DNA of 63,127 nucleotides, counting the filler, from Hyphochytrium catenoides (lineage: Eukaryota; Protista; Hyphochytriomycota): assembly GCA_900088475.1 (NCBI GenBank). It is 8 parts of 8 records of this genome, joined end to end, with 100 filler letters (N's around TTAATTAATTAA, not from the genome) between each part and the next. Parts side by side here need not be neighbours in the genome. Positions count along the whole stretch, not along the records: positions 1 to 22,437 come from FLMG01000243.1; 7 more parts are not named here. The stretch is one strand, 5' to 3'. This document shows, piece by piece, positions 1-18,474 of this stretch. How positions within the stretch are numbered: position 1 is the first letter of the stretch; each line of letters begins with the position of its first letter. A program made the translations under genes and the position numbers. The notes beneath the pieces are model-generated. The model was not told the origin of the DNA and searched no databases. It was given only the letters and a program-made list of their open reading frames with translations.

Positions 1-33
<33 letters not shown>

Positions 34-296
34 GTCTCTCTCTCTTTCTTTCTCATGATTCTTATGTGAGCTTCCCTCTCTCGTCTCTTCATTCAGTGCA
101 GTAACAGCCAAGGAGGTAGCCGTTGGATTGGCCGTTTTTATTATTCTCGGCACAATGGGCTATGGTTTTAGGCATTATGAGCCAGTAAAATGAGAGTTTC
201 TTATTAGTTTCGGCAAAATGAGCGGAAAGATGGGCTCCCAGCTGTTCTTCTTTCTGCAATCTTTTATCATCATCACCATCATCAAGAGTCTCACAC

Positions 297-349
<53 letters not shown>

Positions 350-1710
350 AGAGAAAGAGTGAGAGAGAGAAAATGTAGCCGCCACAAGTTCTAAGTTTTG
401 CCTCGCTCGTGCGTTGTTATCATCATAGTAGTCATCACCCTTCCGGCGGATCAACAACGAAGAAGAGAAGAAGTAGTAGTCAGAAGAAGAGAGAAGACGG
501 CCCAAGAAGAAGAGAGGGGAAACTGAAGAGAAAGACACGTACTCGTGCTTGTCCCTCCTTCTTCTTCACTAATAATGAGGATGGATGAGAAACGTGGAAG
601 AAAAAGGAAGAAGAACGAAGGAACTAGGATGCCTTATTCTCTACCACGAAGAAGAAGAAGAAGAATCGAGAAGAAGGGGAGAAGGAGTGCAACAGGTCAG
701 GCATGCAGCAGAAGAAAGAATGACAGAAAGAAGAATAATCAATAACAAGGGTACCGGGCGGAGGACGACTCCAACGCATCCTTCCACTCCTCGGTGTTTG
801 CTGGTGGTGCTAATGCCGCTACTGCTGCTCGCTGTTGGTGTCATCGCTGGTGCTGCTGCTGTGCCTTGCTCTTTCTTCTTCCTCCGCCTGTTCTCGCATC
901 GCCACCATCGGCCATCATAATAACCATCATCTCTGTTAATTGAGGCCTTTTACCGTCATTCTTCTTCATTCATCGTCATCATTTATCAGCTCCAAGCTCT
1001 TACTTCTTCATTGTCTCTTCTTCTTTTTTGTTTCTTCTCCTCCGCATCATCTCGTTCCGATCCTCTCTTCTGAAGTCCTGTTGTCTTCTCTCTATTTCTC
1101 ACACTCTCTTCAACTTTTTCTCTCCCTTTTTCTTCCCCTCTGTTTGAGCTGCTTCTTCTTCATTATTCCTCTCCCTTCCTCCCGCTCTTCTCCTCCTTCT
1201 TCTTTACTTCTCTCCCTCTCTCTCTTCTGTTGTTATTCCTTCTTCTCTCCTCTTCTCCTGTCTCAGCTCCGTCCTCCCTCCTTCCCTTCTCCCTCTTGCT
1301 CTTCCATCCTTTTCCTTCTTCGTTTCTTCTCTTCTCTCTCTTTCTCTCTCCTTTTCCTCTTCGTCCTCTTCGTCTTTTTGAGCTTGTTGCGGCTTTTATT
1401 CTTTCTCTTCCAGCACTGCTATAAAGAATCATCTCTACTATCTCCTGAGCGACTAAATCAGGACCACGCTGTATTTACTGGGGGTGTTTATTTCAGAAAA
1501 GAGTGTAAGAGGTAAAAAGCATAGATAAGATCTACGAAGAACTTTGGCCTCATTTGACTAATTGGGAAAGTTCACCGGAATAATGCGATAAAGACGGGAA
1601 GCTGTTCTTAGACTATCAGCCTCTTTCTCTCTCTCTTTCTCTCTCTCTTTCTCGCTCTTTCTCTCGTTCTCTCTGCTCTCTCTCTCTCTTTCTCTCTCTC
1701 GTTCTCTCCT

Positions 1711-1838
1711 TCTCTCTGTTCTCTCTCTCTCTTTCTCCCTTGCATCGCTGTTTCTCTCTTTCTCTCTGTCTCCTGATCTGTCTCTCGTTCTCTCTGTTCT
1801 CTCTCTCTCTTTCTCCCTTGCATCGCTGTTTCTCTCTT
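1711..1838. repeat. ~50-bp direct repeat (2 copies) inside a (CT)n tract
   Basis: TCTCTCTGTTCTCTCTCTCTCTTTCTCCCTTGCATCGCTGTTTCTCTCTTT at ~1711-1761 and ~1789-1838. Confidence 0.85.
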
Positions 1839-2701
1839 TTCTGTGGTCTTTCTCTCGCTCTCATGTCTCTTTTAAATAAACTCATCTTGACCAGTTCTTC
1901 TTTGCCTCTCCCTTCCTCTCTTGACTCCTTTTACTCTCTCTCTCTCTCTCTCTCCTTCGCTCTCTCTTGTTTCCTCTAGCCAGGTTCTGATGACACAGAT
2001 ACTGTCAACAGGATTTTACTTCTTTCTTCGTTTGTTGTCTCTTTCTGCCCTAGTGGTCTCTTCAGTACAACTGCCCTACTCTTTTTTCATCACTTCTTTC
2101 TCCGTGTTTCCCCGCATTGTCTTCATCTATTTTCTTCGTGTGCGTCTCTCACTCTCTCTCTCTCTCACTGTCTGTCTCTTGCATATTGTCTCTCTTGCTT
2201 CTCTCTCTCTCTTTGTGGCTGCACTCTCTCTCCGTCTCTTTTGGTTCCTCTTCTTCCTCTTTCAATCTCCTGCTCTTCTTCTCTCCTTTTTGCTTTTGGG
2301 GAGGCTATGCCAAGTGAGAAAGCAAACGAGAGGAGGTCGCTGAGAACTGAGAAGAGAGAGAGAGAGAAGAGCAAGAGAGAGAGCAAGAGAGAGAGCAAGA
2401 GAGAGAGAGAGAGAGGGAGAAAGGAGAGACTTTAGGTAGAGGATGACGGCGCGGCCCCGGCCCCATTTCATCTTGCCGGCGGCCTGTAGACCTCCTTACT
2501 TTCCAATAAACTCAATCTTGCTCTTTCATGCATGCAGCAGACCCTTCTTCCCTTTCTCCCGACAGGACTCTCAGTCTCTATTCTTTCAATCTCTCTCTCT
2601 CTCTCTCTCTCCTCCCGTTTTTGCTTTTCTCTCTCTCTCTTTCGTAGGTCAAAGCACTTGGGGAGAAGAGAGAGCAGGCGCTAAAACCTTCAGAAGCAAC
2701 A

Positions 2702-4434
2702 ATGGGCGAAGAGCCAGCCGGTGGTGCAGGAGCAGAAGGAGAGAGAAACCTAGCGGATGACGTCTCCTCTCCCTGCAAAAGTAGCGCAACAGCTTCGCGC
2801 GTTGTCTCCGGCGGAGTGGGAACGTCTCTCTTCTCTTCTTCTTTTTCCTCTTCTCTCTCTCCCGCTGAACGCCAGCAAGGAGAGAGAGGAAAAGAGGGAA
2901 GGGAGAAAGAAGAAGGAGAACGTAGGGAGGAGACGGTGTTTGACACGTCTCTCGGGAGAGAGGAGGAGTTCCCTTCTTCTTCTCTCTTTCTTCAGCTAGT
3001 CGACTTCAGACTGACATCTCTCTCTCCTTCACGAGAGAGAGAGACAGCTTCCAAGAAGACGCTGCAGATAGAGGCTGTTTTGAGACTTAAGGCGAGGCAG
3101 GGGAAGAGAGAAGAGACTGAAGAAACCACGGAGAACAAGAGGGAAAGAGAGAGAAGAGAAGAAATAGAATGGAAGATTGTCTCTTCTCTTTCGGACCTTG
3201 TCCGTCACGTTGATTCTGTCCGCTCTGTCTTCACAGTGGACCAAGGAAAGGGACTCTTATCTCAGCGCTACTGCCAGCGATGCTTCCTTCTCTCTCGACT
3301 CTTCGAGTACGTCAATCTCTCCAAGAGAGGCGTGAAAAAGGAGAGAGAAGAGGAGAAGAAGAGACAACTTCTTCTCTTCTTCTATGGAAGGCTCACGGAT
3401 CTCTTCAATCTGATGCACAGCATCCCTCTCTCTCCTCCCTGTTCCTGCACTGTTTGCGACTCTTTCCTCTTTGAGACTCTTCCCTTGACTTTCTTGCAGA
3501 TGCCTGAAGGCACAATAGAGAGAGTTCTCTCTTTTTCTCTTTCTTCTTCTTCTTCTTCTGGAATCTCTCCTCCTGGCTTACGTCTCTCTCCTCCTGCTCC
3601 TCCGCCCTCTTCTTCTTCTCTCTCCGCCTACCGCTCAGCCCCTTCTTTCGCTAACAAATTCTTAAAGAAGATGGGCATGGCGGGAGAAGGAGAGAAAATG
3701 AACTTCCGTCCTCAGGTTCTTCTCTCTTCTCTCTCTCTCCTTGCAAAGAGGAGGAAAGGGTTGAGGTTGGAAGTAAAGGAGGTAACGGTAGAGAGAGAGA
3801 CAAGAAAGGTGAGCTTCATTGTCTCTCAGACTGAGGTCATAACGCTGGAAAAGACAGACGAAGAGGAGGAGAGAACCGAACTGACGAGAGAAGAGAAGAA
3901 AGAGTGGAAGATACGCACGGACATGGAAGACATTCGAGGTTTGGCTCTTGGGGTTCGCGGTTACTTTGAAGACTATGAGAGAAACAGGAGACTCTTCTCC
4001 TGCACGCACTGCGACCAACTTCTCTCTCTCTGGGAGCAGGTCCGCTCTTTGAGACTCTTTCTGGATAAGATTCAGGGGAAGGGAAGAGAAGAGAGTCTGA
4101 CCAGCTTTCTTTCTTCTCTTTGTGGAGCTATCGCGCGGCATACGAGAGAGACGAGGAACCTCAGCTCCTTCTGCTCGGGTGCTATGTCCTCCATAGGCAA
4201 TTCTCTGCCAAGCTCTTAGGCCTCTCCTTCTGCCTGCATGGCTTTGAGCAGGAGAAGAAGGCGGAGGCGGCGGGAGAGAGAGAGGAGACAAAAGAAGACC
4301 CGTCCCCGTGCTCGCGTGACGGCTGTCTCCTCTGTCAGATCATGAACAAGAGCCATCCTGCGGCCAGGCGGTTGTGCAGTTTGAGAGATGGGGCCGCCTT
4401 CTTCTTGAAAAGGACGTGGCTTATGGGAGGCTAA
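2702..4434 (+). CDS. Hypothetical protein with two internally repeated, possibly PX-like, Cys-containing units; probable 2-nt frameshift at ~4118
   Basis: The 505-aa ORF has two similar units: EWKIVSSLSDL...YCQRCFLL...CSCTVC and EWKIRTDMEDI...FSCTHCDQLL. Removing one CT at 4118-4119 joins it to ORF 4120-4434 (SFLSSLWSYRAAY...GCYVLH...CSRDGCLLC), which completes the second unit. The PX-like call rests only on the W-x-I/V...helix pattern. Confidence 0.6.
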
Positions 4435-4436
4435 CA

Positions 4437-4479
<43 letters not shown>

Positions 4480-5399
4480 CTCTTTCTCTTTTCCTCCATC
4501 TCTACCTGAAAACGGGGCCACATCGCCTTCTCTTCCTGCTTAACATCGACTACCAAGAGCGAGGCAGCAAGATTTTTGCCCCTTTCTCTTCTCTAGAAGA
4601 TCCCACCTTCTACTCGCCCTGCGTTCAACATCCACCTCGGTCTCTCCTTTCCCTTCGTGACCATTCTATCTTTTATCGTTCTCTTCTTCTTTCTTGGCAA
4701 TTCTTTCGTCTTGTTCTCCACGCTTCTCTCTGATATTCCTCTCTTTTCGTCTATCTCTTTCCTCTCTGGCCGCTCGCCTCTCTGCTCGATAGACTAACAA
4801 GAATGGAAGTCAATAACAAAGGGATCTTCATTGTCGGGGTACGACCTCTGTCTTCTAGATGCCACGGACGGTCGGCCGCCTCGTGTCCTTTGCCTTTCCC
4901 TTTAGTGAGGGGAAAGTGGAGCCCGACGGCATCATTATTCTTCCTCCGAAAGAGAGACAGAGAGAGAGAGAGAATGAGAGAAAGAAAGAGAGAGAGAAGG
5001 AGAGAGAGAGAGAGAGTAGGAACAGAAGACACACATTCCTGCTAGACGAAGGCACTATCCTCCTTATTAATATTCTCCTTCTTGCTTGCCCTTGCCCATT
5101 ACGTCGATCCAGGACAGAACAGCTGGGACGACAGAAGTCACCATCTTCCTCCTAGAGCCTATCGTCTTTCTCTCTCTCTCTCCCCGTCCCGCATGAAAGG
5201 ATCTACGTAATGGGCAAAGGCAAGGGCGAGCCCAAGCAGGGAACAAAGCAGTGAGTTGGCTTATTAACTTATCAGGGCATGCTTGACCATCCGCTGCAAG
5301 GTTTCCTTAAGCTTATCGTCTCTCTTTTCTGTCTTTGGCACTCCGCCCTACCATCAGCTTCTTCTCTTCTTTCCTATCATCATCATGATATCTCTGACA

Positions 5400-11000: not shown

Positions 11001-11579
11001 GGAACATGTTCATGACTTCAGTCTGACTGAGTGAGAGTGTCCAGCCCACGGCCAAGCCCAAGATAGAAGGTCGTGCCGAGAAAAATGCACCTCTTCTAGT
11101 AAATTCTATAACCGTTTGCCTAGTGTACCATCTGCTGCTTCCTTCCTTACTTTCTGACTTTTCTCTACTATTCACCTTCCTCCTTTTACCTCATCTTCTT
11201 TCTTTCTTCATCTTTTACTTCTTCTTAGTAGACATTAGTAGTAGTACTTCTTCTTAGCAGCAAATGTATAGAAAAAAAAAGATCACCACGCTGATAGTGA
11301 TGATGTTTGGTGCGTGCTCCTTTCCTTTGCTTTTCTCTTAGATTATGATTTCTGAGAAACCCCTAATGATTATGCTACTTGCTTTTCTGATAGTAATGAT
11401 CAAGGGACGTGGGCTGAAGAAGCCAAGAGTTGGTAGCTTTTACCTTTCTCGTTCTCCTCCTTCTCTTCTCTTCTTCTTCTTCTTTATTTCTTCTCCTTCT
11501 TTTTCTTCTTCTTCTTCGTTTTCTTCCCCTTCTTCTTGTTCTCTAGTTTCTTCTTCTCAATTCTCTTGTTCTTCTGCCC

Positions 11580-12150: not shown

Positions 12151-12169
12151 TGGTATCCTCTTCACTGCT

Positions 12170-12398
12170 CTTCTTCTTGTCCTTCTTCTTCTTCTCCTTC
12201 TTCTTCACCTTCTTCTTCACCTTCTTCTTCACCTTCTTCGTCTTATATTTCTTCGTCTCCTCCTCCCCCTTCTTCTTCTTCTTCTTCTTCTTCTCCTTCT
12301 TCATTCTTCTCCTTTTCCTCCTCCTTCTTCTTCTTCTCCTTCTTCTTCTCCTTCTTCTTCTCCTTCTTCTTCTCCTTCTTCTTCACTTCCTTCTTCTT
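12170..12398. repeat. (CTT)n/(CTC)n trinucleotide low-complexity tract
   Basis: Runs of CTTCTTCTT and a CTTCTTCTTCAC unit repeated 3 times. On the minus strand it reads as a K/E-rich stretch upstream of the SET relic. Confidence 0.9.
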
Positions 12399-15108: not shown

Positions 15109-18100
15109 ATGACAAAGATGTCGCTTCGCGGGCTGGAGATCGTCAGAAGAAAAGGTGGAAGAGGGTCCTTCTCCACGACCACTTTGCTTCTCTTTTCTGC
15201 GGCGGCCTCAGTTCTCTGCAGTATGCCGGCTTTCTTCCAGCTGTCTGAGGGCCTAGCCCAGGAGCTTCAGGCTGCGAACAACGATCATATTCCCATCCAA
15301 GGCGCTGGGGCTCCGCTTGGTATCTACCTTATGAGTCTCGCGGTGATGCATTACAATTGGGAGGTACCGCCGGAGTATGCCATCAAAGCGCCTTACTACT
15401 ATATTCCATACAACGACATGTACCCGACCTTCACTGCAGACAAGTCCAAGCTGGAGTTCATCATCGACGCCAGTGCCCCTCCTGATGCAACCTTCGTTGA
15501 TCCAGTCACCAACACCCCGACGTCCTTCGACACATATCCAGTGACTGCCTTTGGCTTTGCCCTTGGTTACAATCTTAAAGGCGATGATGGTCAAGACATC
15601 CCTAATCTCGTCGTGCCACAGGAAGCGATTCCGCTCATTCTATGGGGTGAGATCACCCATTGGGATGACCCAGCTCTCAAGCAAGTCAACCCAGGGGTCA
15701 GCCTTCCCAACAGGCCCATCAAGGTGGTGCATCGCGCCGATAACAGCCAGTGCGCTGTGCAGCTCTCCAAGATCTTGGTTAACTTCAACAGCTCGTTTGC
15801 AGAAAGGATTGGCAGCAACACAGCTCAACACAACTACTGCTCAAATACATCTCTAGTTAACGGAGTGTTTCCTGACGTTGAGTTCGTCAGTGGAAGTAAC
15901 GTGAAGAAGTATGTGCGGTGTAAGACTACGGGCTTCAGGTACATCGAGGTGCCAACTCTTGAGATGCAAATATCCGTCCTATCTACTGAGAAGGATTCCG
16001 TCGGTATCATCCCGCTCACAGCCAGCACCAAGCACATTCCTCTCACCGCAATCCGTACCACCTTGTCTAAGCAAGTCCTGACAGCCAATCTAACGACCAT
16101 GACCTACGCCCAGATGGAGAAAGGTGTCAACAAGGATAAATATCTACGCACCGAGCTCTTGGGCTCTCAGTATGGATGGCCGATGACCGGCTTTCTCTAC
16201 TTTATCATTCGCAAGGACTCTCACTCCACCATTGGATGTCGCGAGCGGAGTAACCTGTACAGATTCTTAAAGTGGTGGCTGCGAAGTGACCAAGCGAAAG
16301 AGTTCTTGATAAACAACCGCTTCTCTCCCTTGGTCGAGACCTTTGCCCTTGAAGTGGTTACCAAGCTTGAGGAAGGGTTCCTGGTATGCGGCTGTGACAG
16401 CCAGAACGAAGGACAAGCTGGGAAAGGTACTTGTGAGCGCGTTTCTGACCTCGTCGATCCTACCTTGTACAAGTTCCAAGGCCCACAACTCTACCGAGAC
16501 ATCTTGAGTGTCACCCTCGAGTCCTATTGGAACACCAGGCGCATTGACAACGCCAAGCTGCAGTACGCGTCAACGTCAGCAAAGTACGGCAGTGCGGTGG
16601 CAGTAGCAGAAGGAACGACTGCTGCCATTGTCAACGTGGATAATTATGAAGGAGAGGACGGGTCGGACAGGCTACGCGTACCTTTCCTTGAGATCCCTGT
16701 GGGTATCCTCTACTGCTTGCCAGGCACAACGGCAAGCCTCAACGTAACTGAAGAGATCTTTACAAAGATACTGAAGGGTGAGATCACGCAGTGGAATGAC
16801 CGCGCTTTACTGGCAATCAACCCTCTTGCGGCAGCGACTAACCAGCTTCCCAACAAGAAGATCATCGTCGTGGACAGGCTAGGACAGACTGAGATAGGGA
16901 ACTTCATGGCAGATCGAGGATATGAAGCAACAGCTGCAGATCTCAAGGAGTATGGAGTCAGCTCTGAGCTGGACGTTCTGAACATGGTGATGCAGACTCC
17001 CTACTCCATCGCGTACTGGGTGCCGGTTATGTATGTTCCTGACAACCCCGTAAAGTTTGCCAAGATTATTGACAAGAACAACCAAGTCATCGATCGCTCA
17101 ATGATAGACGAGTGGCCTTTGGTCATCCGGAGCATGCTAGAGCTTAGTCCTAAGATCTCAGGCAACTGCAAGAAGGAAGGCCCTCTCTTTGACACACTGC
17201 GGTTTATTGGGTGGATCTATGAGCATACTGACACTGCCAACATCGCCTTCCGAAGCGTAGGAGCGTACCTGGCGGGCCAGAGAACCGATCTCGACTCGTT
17301 GCTGCAAGTGCGGTGCAATGGGCAGTCTATATTGGCCGCTTCTCGTGGCTGTGGACGTCATGATATGAGCATCGCGACCACCTCTTGCAACCCACGCACC
17401 CAGTCTCACACAGCAATCTTCTCATGGACTGAGGGAGACCGGCGAACGTGCTATGGGGGCGACGATCTCTACGAAAACACCGACTATCCATGCGACCATG
17501 TCGCCCTTGGAGGCGGCGCACTCCCCGCACTGGTTATCGCGATTGCAGCGCTTGGAATCGTGACGTGCTTGGTACTGATGGGTTGGACCTATATCCACAG
17601 GCACACGGCGATCATCGTAATGGCTCAGCGGCCATTCTGCTACTCCTTCCTACTTGCGGCCATACTCCTTAATGTCTCCTCTCTAACCTTTATTGGTGCG
17701 AACACGGATTCTAGCTGCCTGCTTCGACCATGGGCCTTCCACCTAAGCTCCACGCTGATGTACGGCACACTCTTCATGAAGCTCTTGAGGGTCCAGCAGC
17801 TCTTCAACAACCCACAGCTGAAGAGGAAGGCGATCACCAACGCGACTATCGCTGTCAGAATCATCTCTGTCATCTCCGTTGACATCTTGCTACTCGTGCT
17901 CTGGTCCGCCATTAGCACTCCCGAGGCTGTTGATACGGATGTGATTGTCAACACGTTCCACGTCACGATGAAGACATGCGGCTCCAAATACCATGGAGCC
18001 TTTACCGTCTTGATGGCTGCTTGGAAAGCCAGCCTTGTAGGGTCAGGATGCTACTTTGCGAAGAAGTCCTGGGACATCGACGCCAACTACTCTGAAGCTA

Positions 18101-18474
18101 AGCACATGGCGATTGCTCTGTATAACTCCATCCTACTAGGAGCTATCACTTTTGCCATGCAATACTCGGCTCTTACTGCTCCAAGCTATGTGGTGCTCCA
18201 GACCATGGCCATCATGATAGCTGCGACAGGATCAGCCATCATGGTAATGGGCCCGAAGCTGTACTACCTGTACAAGAACCCCAGCGCAAGGATGACCCGG
18301 AAGACGGGAAGTGGAGGAGGTGCAACTGGCCAAGCATCAGGTACCCAGCAAGGAGGAGGAAGCAGCCATCATGCAGGTGGCGGCAGCAGTCACGGAGGAG
18401 GCAGCGTGAGCTTGAAAGCGAAGGCCACCGAGGTTGTTCCCGCTCCAGTACCAGTGAAGCCTACTCCAAAATAG
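15109..18474 (+). CDS. Class C (GABA-B-like, 7tm_3) GPCR with two tandem PstS-like periplasmic-binding-protein domains and a Cys-rich linker; intronless, 1121 aa
   Basis: N-terminal hydrophobic signal-like segment. PBP1 (~15289-16335): IQGAGA...GYNL...GEITHWDDPALKQVNPGVSLPNRPIKVVHRADNS...WPMTGFLY...FLKWWL...FSPL. PBP2 (~16465-17315): GEITQWNDRALLAINP...LPNKKIIVVDR...TPYSIAY...WPLV...FIGWIY. Four-Cys linker at 17350-17500. Seven hydrophobic helices (~17520-18270) with class C signatures AQRPFC, C..RPW...LMYGTLFMKLLRV..LF, VD..LL.LW, EAKHMAIALYN and GPKL. G/S/H-rich tail. Confidence 0.93.
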   Translation: MTKMSLRGLEIVRRKGGRGSFSTTTLLLFSAAASVLCSMPAFFQLSEGLAQELQAANNDHIPIQGAGAPLGIYLMSLAVMHYNWEVPPEYAIKAPYYYIPYNDMYPTFTADKSKLEFIIDASAPPDATFVDPVTNTPTSFDTYPVTAFGFALGYNLKGDDGQDIPNLVVPQEAIPLILWGEITHWDDPALKQVNPGVSLPNRPIKVVHRADNSQCAVQLSKILVNFNSSFAERIGSNTAQHNYCSNTSLVNGVFPDVEFVSGSNVKKYVRCKTTGFRYIEVPTLEMQISVLSTEKDSVGIIPLTASTKHIPLTAIRTTLSKQVLTANLTTMTYAQMEKGVNKDKYLRTELLGSQYGWPMTGFLYFIIRKDSHSTIGCRERSNLYRFLKWWLRSDQAKEFLINNRFSPLVETFALEVVTKLEEGFLVCGCDSQNEGQAGKGTCERVSDLVDPTLYKFQGPQLYRDILSVTLESYWNTRRIDNAKLQYASTSAKYGSAVAVAEGTTAAIVNVDNYEGEDGSDRLRVPFLEIPVGILYCLPGTTASLNVTEEIFTKILKGEITQWNDRALLAINPLAAATNQLPNKKIIVVDRLGQTEIGNFMADRGYEATAADLKEYGVSSELDVLNMVMQTPYSIAYWVPVMYVPDNPVKFAKIIDKNNQVIDRSMIDEWPLVIRSMLELSPKISGNCKKEGPLFDTLRFIGWIYEHTDTANIAFRSVGAYLAGQRTDLDSLLQVRCNGQSILAASRGCGRHDMSIATTSCNPRTQSHTAIFSWTEGDRRTCYGGDDLYENTDYPCDHVALGGGALPALVIAIAALGIVTCLVLMGWTYIHRHTAIIVMAQRPFCYSFLLAAILLNVSSLTFIGANTDSSCLLRPWAFHLSSTLMYGTLFMKLLRVQQLFNNPQLKRKAITNATIAVRIISVISVDILLLVLWSAISTPEAVDTDVIVNTFHVTMKTCGSKYHGAFTVLMAAWKASLVGSGCYFAKKSWDIDANYSEAKHMAIALYNSILLGAITFAMQYSALTAPSYVVLQTMAIMIAATGSAIMVMGPKLYYLYKNPSARMTRKTGSGGGATGQASGTQQGGGSSHHAGGGSSHGGGSVSLKAKATEVVPAPVPVKPTPK

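Follow-up and report, generated by a model that had tools for sequence, protein, structure and literature searches.

Animal class C G-protein-coupled receptors (GPCRs), such as GABA-B2, mGlu2 and CaSR (PDB 7ca3, 8wg9 and 8wpu), carry a large extracellular clamshell, which is a single type I flytrap of the ANF_receptor family, joined through a Cys-containing stalk to a seven-transmembrane (7TM) core of the 7tm_3 family. The phosphate-binding protein PstS of bacteria (E. coli, 1ixh and 2abh; Y. pestis, 2z22) is, for its part, the soluble partner of PstCAB and has the type II two-lobe fold. The present work deals with a gene of Hyphochytrium catenoides (assembly GCA_900088475.1) whose product combines both: a tandem of PstS-like domains fused to a class C GPCR. 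The gene lies on the plus strand at positions 15109 to 18474 of the window, that is, the whole stretch of DNA analysed (63,127 nucleotides, made of eight parts joined end to end), within the 22.4 kb piece taken from FLMG01000243.1. It is a complete single-exon open reading frame (ORF) of 1121 amino acids including its stop, encoding a signal-like N-terminus, a membrane-distal PstS-like domain (D1), a membrane-proximal one (D2), a Cys-rich stalk, the class C core and a short tail.

Class C receptors from outside the animals have also been described, with OpuAC, BMP, SBP_bac_1 or LysR_substrate domains and including the Grl proteins of Dictyostelium. They likewise place a bacterial-type solute-binding domain on a 7tm_3 core, but the binding-protein family is a different one and, as described, a single domain is present, in contrast to the fixed tandem with a degenerate proximal copy found here. 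A survey of GPCR architectures includes ANF_receptor, OpuAC and Bmp configurations (PMC3971589). The combination of PBP_like_2 and 7tm_3 was catalogued in 2012 for the Spizellomyces receptor SPPG_06488 (PMC3251606), and in 2016 seven Plasmodiophora proteins with 7tm3 and solute- or periplasmic-binding-protein (SBP/PBP) domains were interpreted as novel transporters, the label "phosphate transporters" being given to four, and the fusions were claimed as unique to that organism (PMC4815078). These catalogued proteins share the domain combination with the Hyphochytrium receptor, which is at most 30% identical to them and differs in having a unique D1 site and a short D2 devoid of a family Cys pair.

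A first interpretation, made from the DNA alone and referred to below as the sequence-only reading, had stated that no receptor of such architecture was known to be characterised. No functional study of a PstS-bearing or phosphate-sensing class C or seven-transmembrane receptor was found in the literature; the domain combination itself had already been catalogued in the papers cited above. None of the papers found describes the tandem structure or the asymmetry between D1 and D2. What is added here is that the two domains of the ectodomain form a fixed tandem of single origin, in which the distal copy often keeps a complete PstS site and the proximal copy shows the same alteration throughout. 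The sensing of external phosphate at the cell surface is still poorly understood in eukaryotes, and the presence of the PstS fold, the best-understood phosphate binder, directly on a GPCR core would make the question of phosphate sensing testable.

Architecture and integrity of the receptor gene

The reading frame begins with an ATG at 15109, exactly where the sequence-only reading had placed it, and runs uninterrupted to its stop; it is the only ORF of more than 505 amino acids in its 22.4 kb piece. Since two in-frame stops lie 6-7 codons 5' of the ATG, the N-terminus is fixed, barring an upstream exon. Moreover, 3.4 kb free of stops together with four ordered and independently recognisable modules cannot be a product of chance. 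The first 43 residues (positions 15109 to 15237) form an N-terminal signal peptide or membrane anchor, whose hydrophobic core was located by a hydropathy scan at residues 21-43, in line with the signal-like start proposed earlier, and which appears as a low-confidence helix in the AlphaFold model. The full-length model (mean predicted local distance difference test, pLDDT, 73.9; predicted TM-score, pTM, 0.48) matched in Foldseek searches both PstS, with a target-normalised TM-score (TMt) of up to 0.80, and class C 7TM cores.

Both D1 and D2 have the PstS fold, a type II two-lobe binding protein. The Pfam profile PBP_like_2 (E 2.6e-12) and the NCBIfam PstS profile TIGR00975 (E 2.6e-30) were each found in two stretches of the receptor, as had been anticipated together with the 7tm_3 match, and the PstS-family profile TIGR02136 matched residues 546-658; the TIGR00975 score was 105.6 bits, under the equivalog cut-off of 205. 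Within D1 (residues 55-451, positions 15271 to 16461), residues 126-239 align to the E. coli and Yersinia PstS in a phmmer search of the PDB, and a profile-profile alignment of D1 and its nearest relatives covered all 321 positions of the PstS profile with a probability of 100%. D2 (residues 452-745, positions 16462 to 17343) is weak by sequence alone, with a PDB match to PstS3 at E 1e-3; when it was modelled on its own (pLDDT 74.8, pTM 0.74), all 49 best PDB matches were phosphate-binding proteins (PstS, PhoX and DING), with E-values down to 1e-12. Two further features of bacterial PstS are conserved in the receptor, a hinge with the motif G-x-I-x-x-W-[DN]-D and a strand with the motif V-V-x-R. 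The Pfam search of the receptor gave neither ANF_receptor nor NCD3G, and the ectodomain is of PstS type by its structural matches, which bears out the proposal that a type II PstS fold takes the place of the animal type I flytrap. The idea of a duplicated PstS fold holds as to the tandem, but the two domains are not equivalent, given that the D2 site is non-canonical throughout the family.

The stalk (residues 746-800, positions 17344 to 17508) is modelled with short beta strands and contains four cysteines, C748, C760, C781 and C795, each of which is found in 36 of the 40 aligned relatives, the remaining sequences being gapped there. The Cys linker recognised earlier is thus well founded, and differs from the NCD3G domain of animal receptors. 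It leads into the class C domain (residues 801-1064, positions 17509 to 18300), for which Pfam 7tm_3 gave an E-value of 2.8e-41 over residues 807-1050 (142.3 bits, against a gathering cut-off of 33.5), while the C-terminal part of the protein aligns with the PDB entries of GABA-B2, mGlu2 and CaSR (E-values of about 1e-13), the transmembrane (TM) identities being only about 20%. Seven helices are modelled between residues 804 and 1056. The cysteine pair linking TM3 to the second extracellular loop (ECL2), C870/C957, is invariant across the 40 sequences. Roles in class C activation have been established for the ionic lock and the TM7 switch by structural work on mGlu1, mGlu5 and GABA-B. Alignments to mGlu2 and GABA-B2 place K891 at K3.50, E996 of the motif SEAK (E996-A-K998) at E6.35 of NEAK, and P1049-K-L-Y1052 at the PKxY of TM7, all of them features shared with the animal receptors; across the family the K is kept in 39, the E in 32 and the P in 30 of the 40 sequences. 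By these residues the membrane core looks functional, and the class C assignment proposed at the outset is upheld. The protein ends in a Gly/Ser-rich, low-complexity cytoplasmic tail (residues 1065-1121, positions 18301 to 18471), modelled at pLDDT below 50.

The interpretation given to the Plasmodiophora homologues (PMC4815078) would make of such proteins solute uptake systems, in which the PstS domains feed phosphate to a pore formed by the seven helices. For the Hyphochytrium protein this is highly improbable, for its core is a standard class C core with receptor micro-switches, which matches GPCR structures only, and no transporter family was matched. To our knowledge, transport is not known for any 7tm_3 protein. 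Contrary to the claim of uniqueness (PMC4815078), many other eukaryotic lineages have the architecture too, with a receptor core of the standard kind, and the "transporter" label is also unlikely for the Plasmodiophora homologues.

The joining of a bacterial-type domain to a eukaryotic receptor could in principle stem from an assembly chimera between a bacterial pstS and a GPCR gene, or belong to a pseudogene. The exact protein is missing among 15 billion collected proteins, which speaks in this direction, as does the absence of any RNA run among those listed. Logan contigs that contain the locus were available for three DNA runs, which go back to two samples and one coded organism. A 2019-nt contig covers positions 15608 to 17626, from D1 through the stalk into TM1-2, and a separate one covers positions 17074 to 17663, from D2 into TM2. 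Contigs and window disagree at about 1% of sites, so that the runs are not simply the same assembly as the window, and because separately assembled contigs bridge D1, D2, stalk and 7TM, no chimera is present; the chimeric assembly that the sequence-only reading had allowed for was not borne out. Twenty differences are listed inside the ORF, 14 synonymous and 6 non-synonymous, which gives a ratio of non-synonymous to synonymous polymorphism (pN/pS) of about 0.13 (789 synonymous and 2574 non-synonymous sites). Within the ORF, indels are limited to two 1-nt calls, both from run X3, which has low coverage, at a depth of about 3; all well-supported indels lie outside it. The ORF is under purifying selection, its 1121 codons are open, and the same ordered architecture is present in dozens of independent sequences, against which an artefact or a dead gene is barely credible. 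The chimera and pseudogene readings, like the transporter one, were rejected on these grounds (bridging contigs, selection and a receptor-type core). We conclude that the gene is genuine and under selective constraint, and that it encodes a eukaryotic surface receptor in a single exon.

Family history and phosphate-site residues

A search for homologues by word index, with the complete protein as query, gave no match, and the relatives came from an exhaustive search, the 150 best cluster representatives of which are the basis of the family counts. A 7TM core is present in 146 of the 150, and PstS-like domains together with the 7TM in 37. The tandem layout is found in at least 26, comprising 15 with two PstS cores and 11 that are 5'-truncated and retain D2 preceded by the last part of D1. 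Both 7tm_3 and PBP_like_2 are present in Atlas clusters of Chlorophyta, Discosea and Chytridiomycota; a scan of related loci in metagenome contigs gave no confirmed relative. In the tandem relatives P0002, P0012, P0019, P0026 and P0057, D1, D2, stalk and 7TM follow in the same order, and the domains are orthologous to those of the Hyphochytrium receptor.

The D1s and the D2s separate completely in a maximum-likelihood tree built from the binding domains, into a D1 clade with support 95 and a D2 clade with support 99. The Hyphochytrium D1 falls within the former (95, sub-clade 96) and its D2 within the latter (99), on the longest branches of the tree (1.97 and 2.37). Because D1s and D2s form separate clades, the tandem pair arose once, before the family diversified. 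Judged from these sequence comparisons, the receptor is a divergent, fast-evolving member of an old and widespread protist, fungal and algal family. The sequence-only reading had taken it for a separately assembled receptor, which the tree and the 37 representatives with the same domain types contradict; its remark that uncharacterised homologues might be in databases proved right, both through these representatives and through the Spizellomyces and Plasmodiophora proteins already listed.

The classical ligand set of PstS, known from crystal structures, comprises T10, F11, S38, D56, R135, D137, S139, G140 and T141 (mature E. coli numbering). Discrimination between phosphate and sulfate depends on D56, and the F11 position contacts phosphate through its backbone. 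Taking as reference the E. coli PstS from NC_000913.3, and judging the pockets from alignments only, D1 was found canonical at every position except for a family-wide F11 to Leu replacement in P0002, P0026, P0057, P0089, P0121, P0123 and P0124, and the equivalent of D56 was Asp in 12 of 12 sequences. D2, in turn, was canonical in no family sequence of the ligand-residue table: of 40 sequences, 35 have Asp or Glu at the equivalent of G140, and the residue at D56 was hydrophobic wherever it could be aligned. Because the D1 of many relatives holds the full PstS phosphate site, the ancestral ligand of the family was probably orthophosphate.

The D1 of Hyphochytrium has, at the nine positions in the order given, P69, L70, D103 (with doubt), D126, R209, D211, S213, Q214 and C215. 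It retains the residues equivalent to D56, R135, D137 and S139 (D126, R209, D211 and S213), while T10 is replaced by Pro, G140 by Gln and T141 by Cys, substitutions that no other aligned sequence has, and there is no Gly-Ser loop at S38. In D2, the motif R590-L-G-Q-T594-E595-I596 retains the equivalent of R135 and the acidic residue of the family (E595, at G140), with Gly592 at D137 and Ile596 at T141; the N-lobe part of the site is not alignable. Of the nine positions, then, four to five are lost in D1 and about eight in D2, so that neither domain keeps the full coordinating set of PstS. D2 has further been shortened, the segment between the two near-invariant Cys columns of the family being deleted, and the conserved C-lobe Cys pair ("AC..D ... 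CYP/CWP") has been lost or replaced ("EWPLV").

A canonical high-affinity orthophosphate sensor, in which D1, D2 or both bind phosphate as PstS does and report it through a G protein, would fit the PstS fold, the best family matches, the four residues retained in D1 and the whole PstS site held by relatives. It is an unlikely description of this receptor all the same, in view of the Pro, Gln and Cys that it alone carries in D1, the missing Gly-Ser loop, the Gly, Glu and Ile in a D2 with no recognisable N-lobe site, and a PstS profile score well under the cut-off. Because of these losses in both domains, a plain orthophosphate sensor is not the best reading. The sequence-only reading had suggested a phosphate or oxyanion sensor; phosphate as the ligand is plausible for the relatives with a full D1 site, and doubtful for a receptor whose D1 is without T10, S38, G140 and T141 and whose D2 site is nearly all lost. 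The Hyphochytrium protein is, in this sense, a weaker phosphate-sensor candidate than its relatives and a natural example of site drift.

Several variants of the module were also observed. In P0004, P0005, P0017, P0018 and P0100 (1290-1540 amino acids), the D1 matches to the PstS profile are split by about 300 residues, suggesting that D1 contains a large insertion between profile positions of about 205 and 217. Related tandem PstS modules are also present without a 7TM core in P0029 (2386 amino acids), P0097 and P0132. Among these relatives and the AlphaFold DB entries A0A0L0DEK3 and L8GR71, the module takes the form of arrays of at least four copies with no 7TM, and also of a tandem pair on an AlphaFold DB protein named TKL protein kinase. 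Because of these arrays and this kinase, the eukaryote-type PstS module seems to be joined to several signalling outputs.

A proposed sensing mechanism

From the architecture, folds, family membership, selective constraint and residue states described above, we infer a ligand, a relay and coupling to a G protein along the following lines. A small solute would close the two lobes of the distal D1, and the resulting movement would reach the 7TM core by way of the non-canonical D2 and of the stalk, stiffened by disulfides; the core, having the class C activation switches, would signal inside the cell, most likely via a heterotrimeric G protein. In this scheme D2 would bind no ligand, or bind differently, and act as a relay, much like the flytrap of GABA-B2, which does not bind ligand. 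Such a functional cell-surface receptor, with signal peptide, D1, D2, four-Cys stalk and class C 7TM, in which a ligand sensed by D1 is relayed through D2, is the reading we favour, with some confidence.

As to the ligand, the remodelling of the D1 site (T10 to Pro, G140 to Gln, T141 to Cys and no Ser-Gly loop at S38) suggests that it has probably been altered, perhaps to a phosphoryl or oxyanion compound, or that orthophosphate is bound at a changed affinity. Orthophosphate sensing is thus plausible for the family and doubtful for this member. A more far-reaching and tentative proposal is that the family would constitute the first eukaryotic GPCR class for extracellular phosphate, in which a canonical, phosphate-binding D1 would sense and D2, as a pseudo-site with its pocket filled or neutralised by a conserved Asp or Glu, would relay, the Hyphochytrium receptor having been neofunctionalised so that its D1 (Pro69, Gln214 and Cys215) would recognise a different ligand.

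It might also be that the 7TM core is not coupled to G proteins at all and serves adhesion, a scaffold or some other effector, or that the protein works independently of ligand with both sites decayed. The deviation of both sites from PstS, the longest branches in the tree and the loss of the Cys pair in D2 agree with this, but strong purifying selection across the ORF and the intact K3.50, E6.35, PKxY and stalk cysteines argue against it and make it rather improbable.

Some observations weigh against the ligand-driven receptor favoured here. At a pTM of 0.48 the inter-domain geometry of the full-length model is unreliable, and residues 88-136 of the D1 N-lobe were modelled at pLDDT below 50. 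The equivalent of S38 in D1 is ambiguous, being Y101 or D103 according to the method (a two-residue shift). Furthermore, the runs listed for the locus are all of DNA, and identity does not exceed 30% in any relative; because there is no close orthologue, the conservation of the odd site residues is not judgeable.

Gene copies and surroundings

A tblastn search across the rest of the 22 kb piece found no second copy of the receptor. In the DNA runs, contig depth was about 2- to 3-fold higher over the 7TM-coding positions 17473 to 18300, and several contigs had ends there, at 17597, 17786 and 17906-17969, that consist of unrelated "loose" sequence; the raised depth and these ends suggest at least one paralogue elsewhere in the genome with a near-identical TM segment.

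With regard to the rest of the 22 kb piece, Rfam gave no RNA family and Pfam no match for the 505-aa ORF, a 191-aa ORF and ten further stop-to-stop frames, so that no other recognisable gene was found by these scans. The 505-aa ORF, at positions 2702 to 4219, is rich in Ser, Glu, Arg and Leu, gave weak, unnamed matches only in the Atlas search, and is probably a by-product of the GA/CT-rich composition. The flanks of the receptor gene are rich in CT/GA and TCT microsatellites. Positions 1 to 5100 consist of strand-asymmetric, CT-rich and GA-rich low-complexity DNA with many (CT)n and (GA)n arrays, the GC skew reaching -0.5 and the AT skew -0.6 between 1001 and 2000. Finally, two trinucleotide arrays lie between this region and the receptor gene, (TTC) with about 31 copies at 11452-11542 and (TCT) with about 76 copies at 12169-12398.

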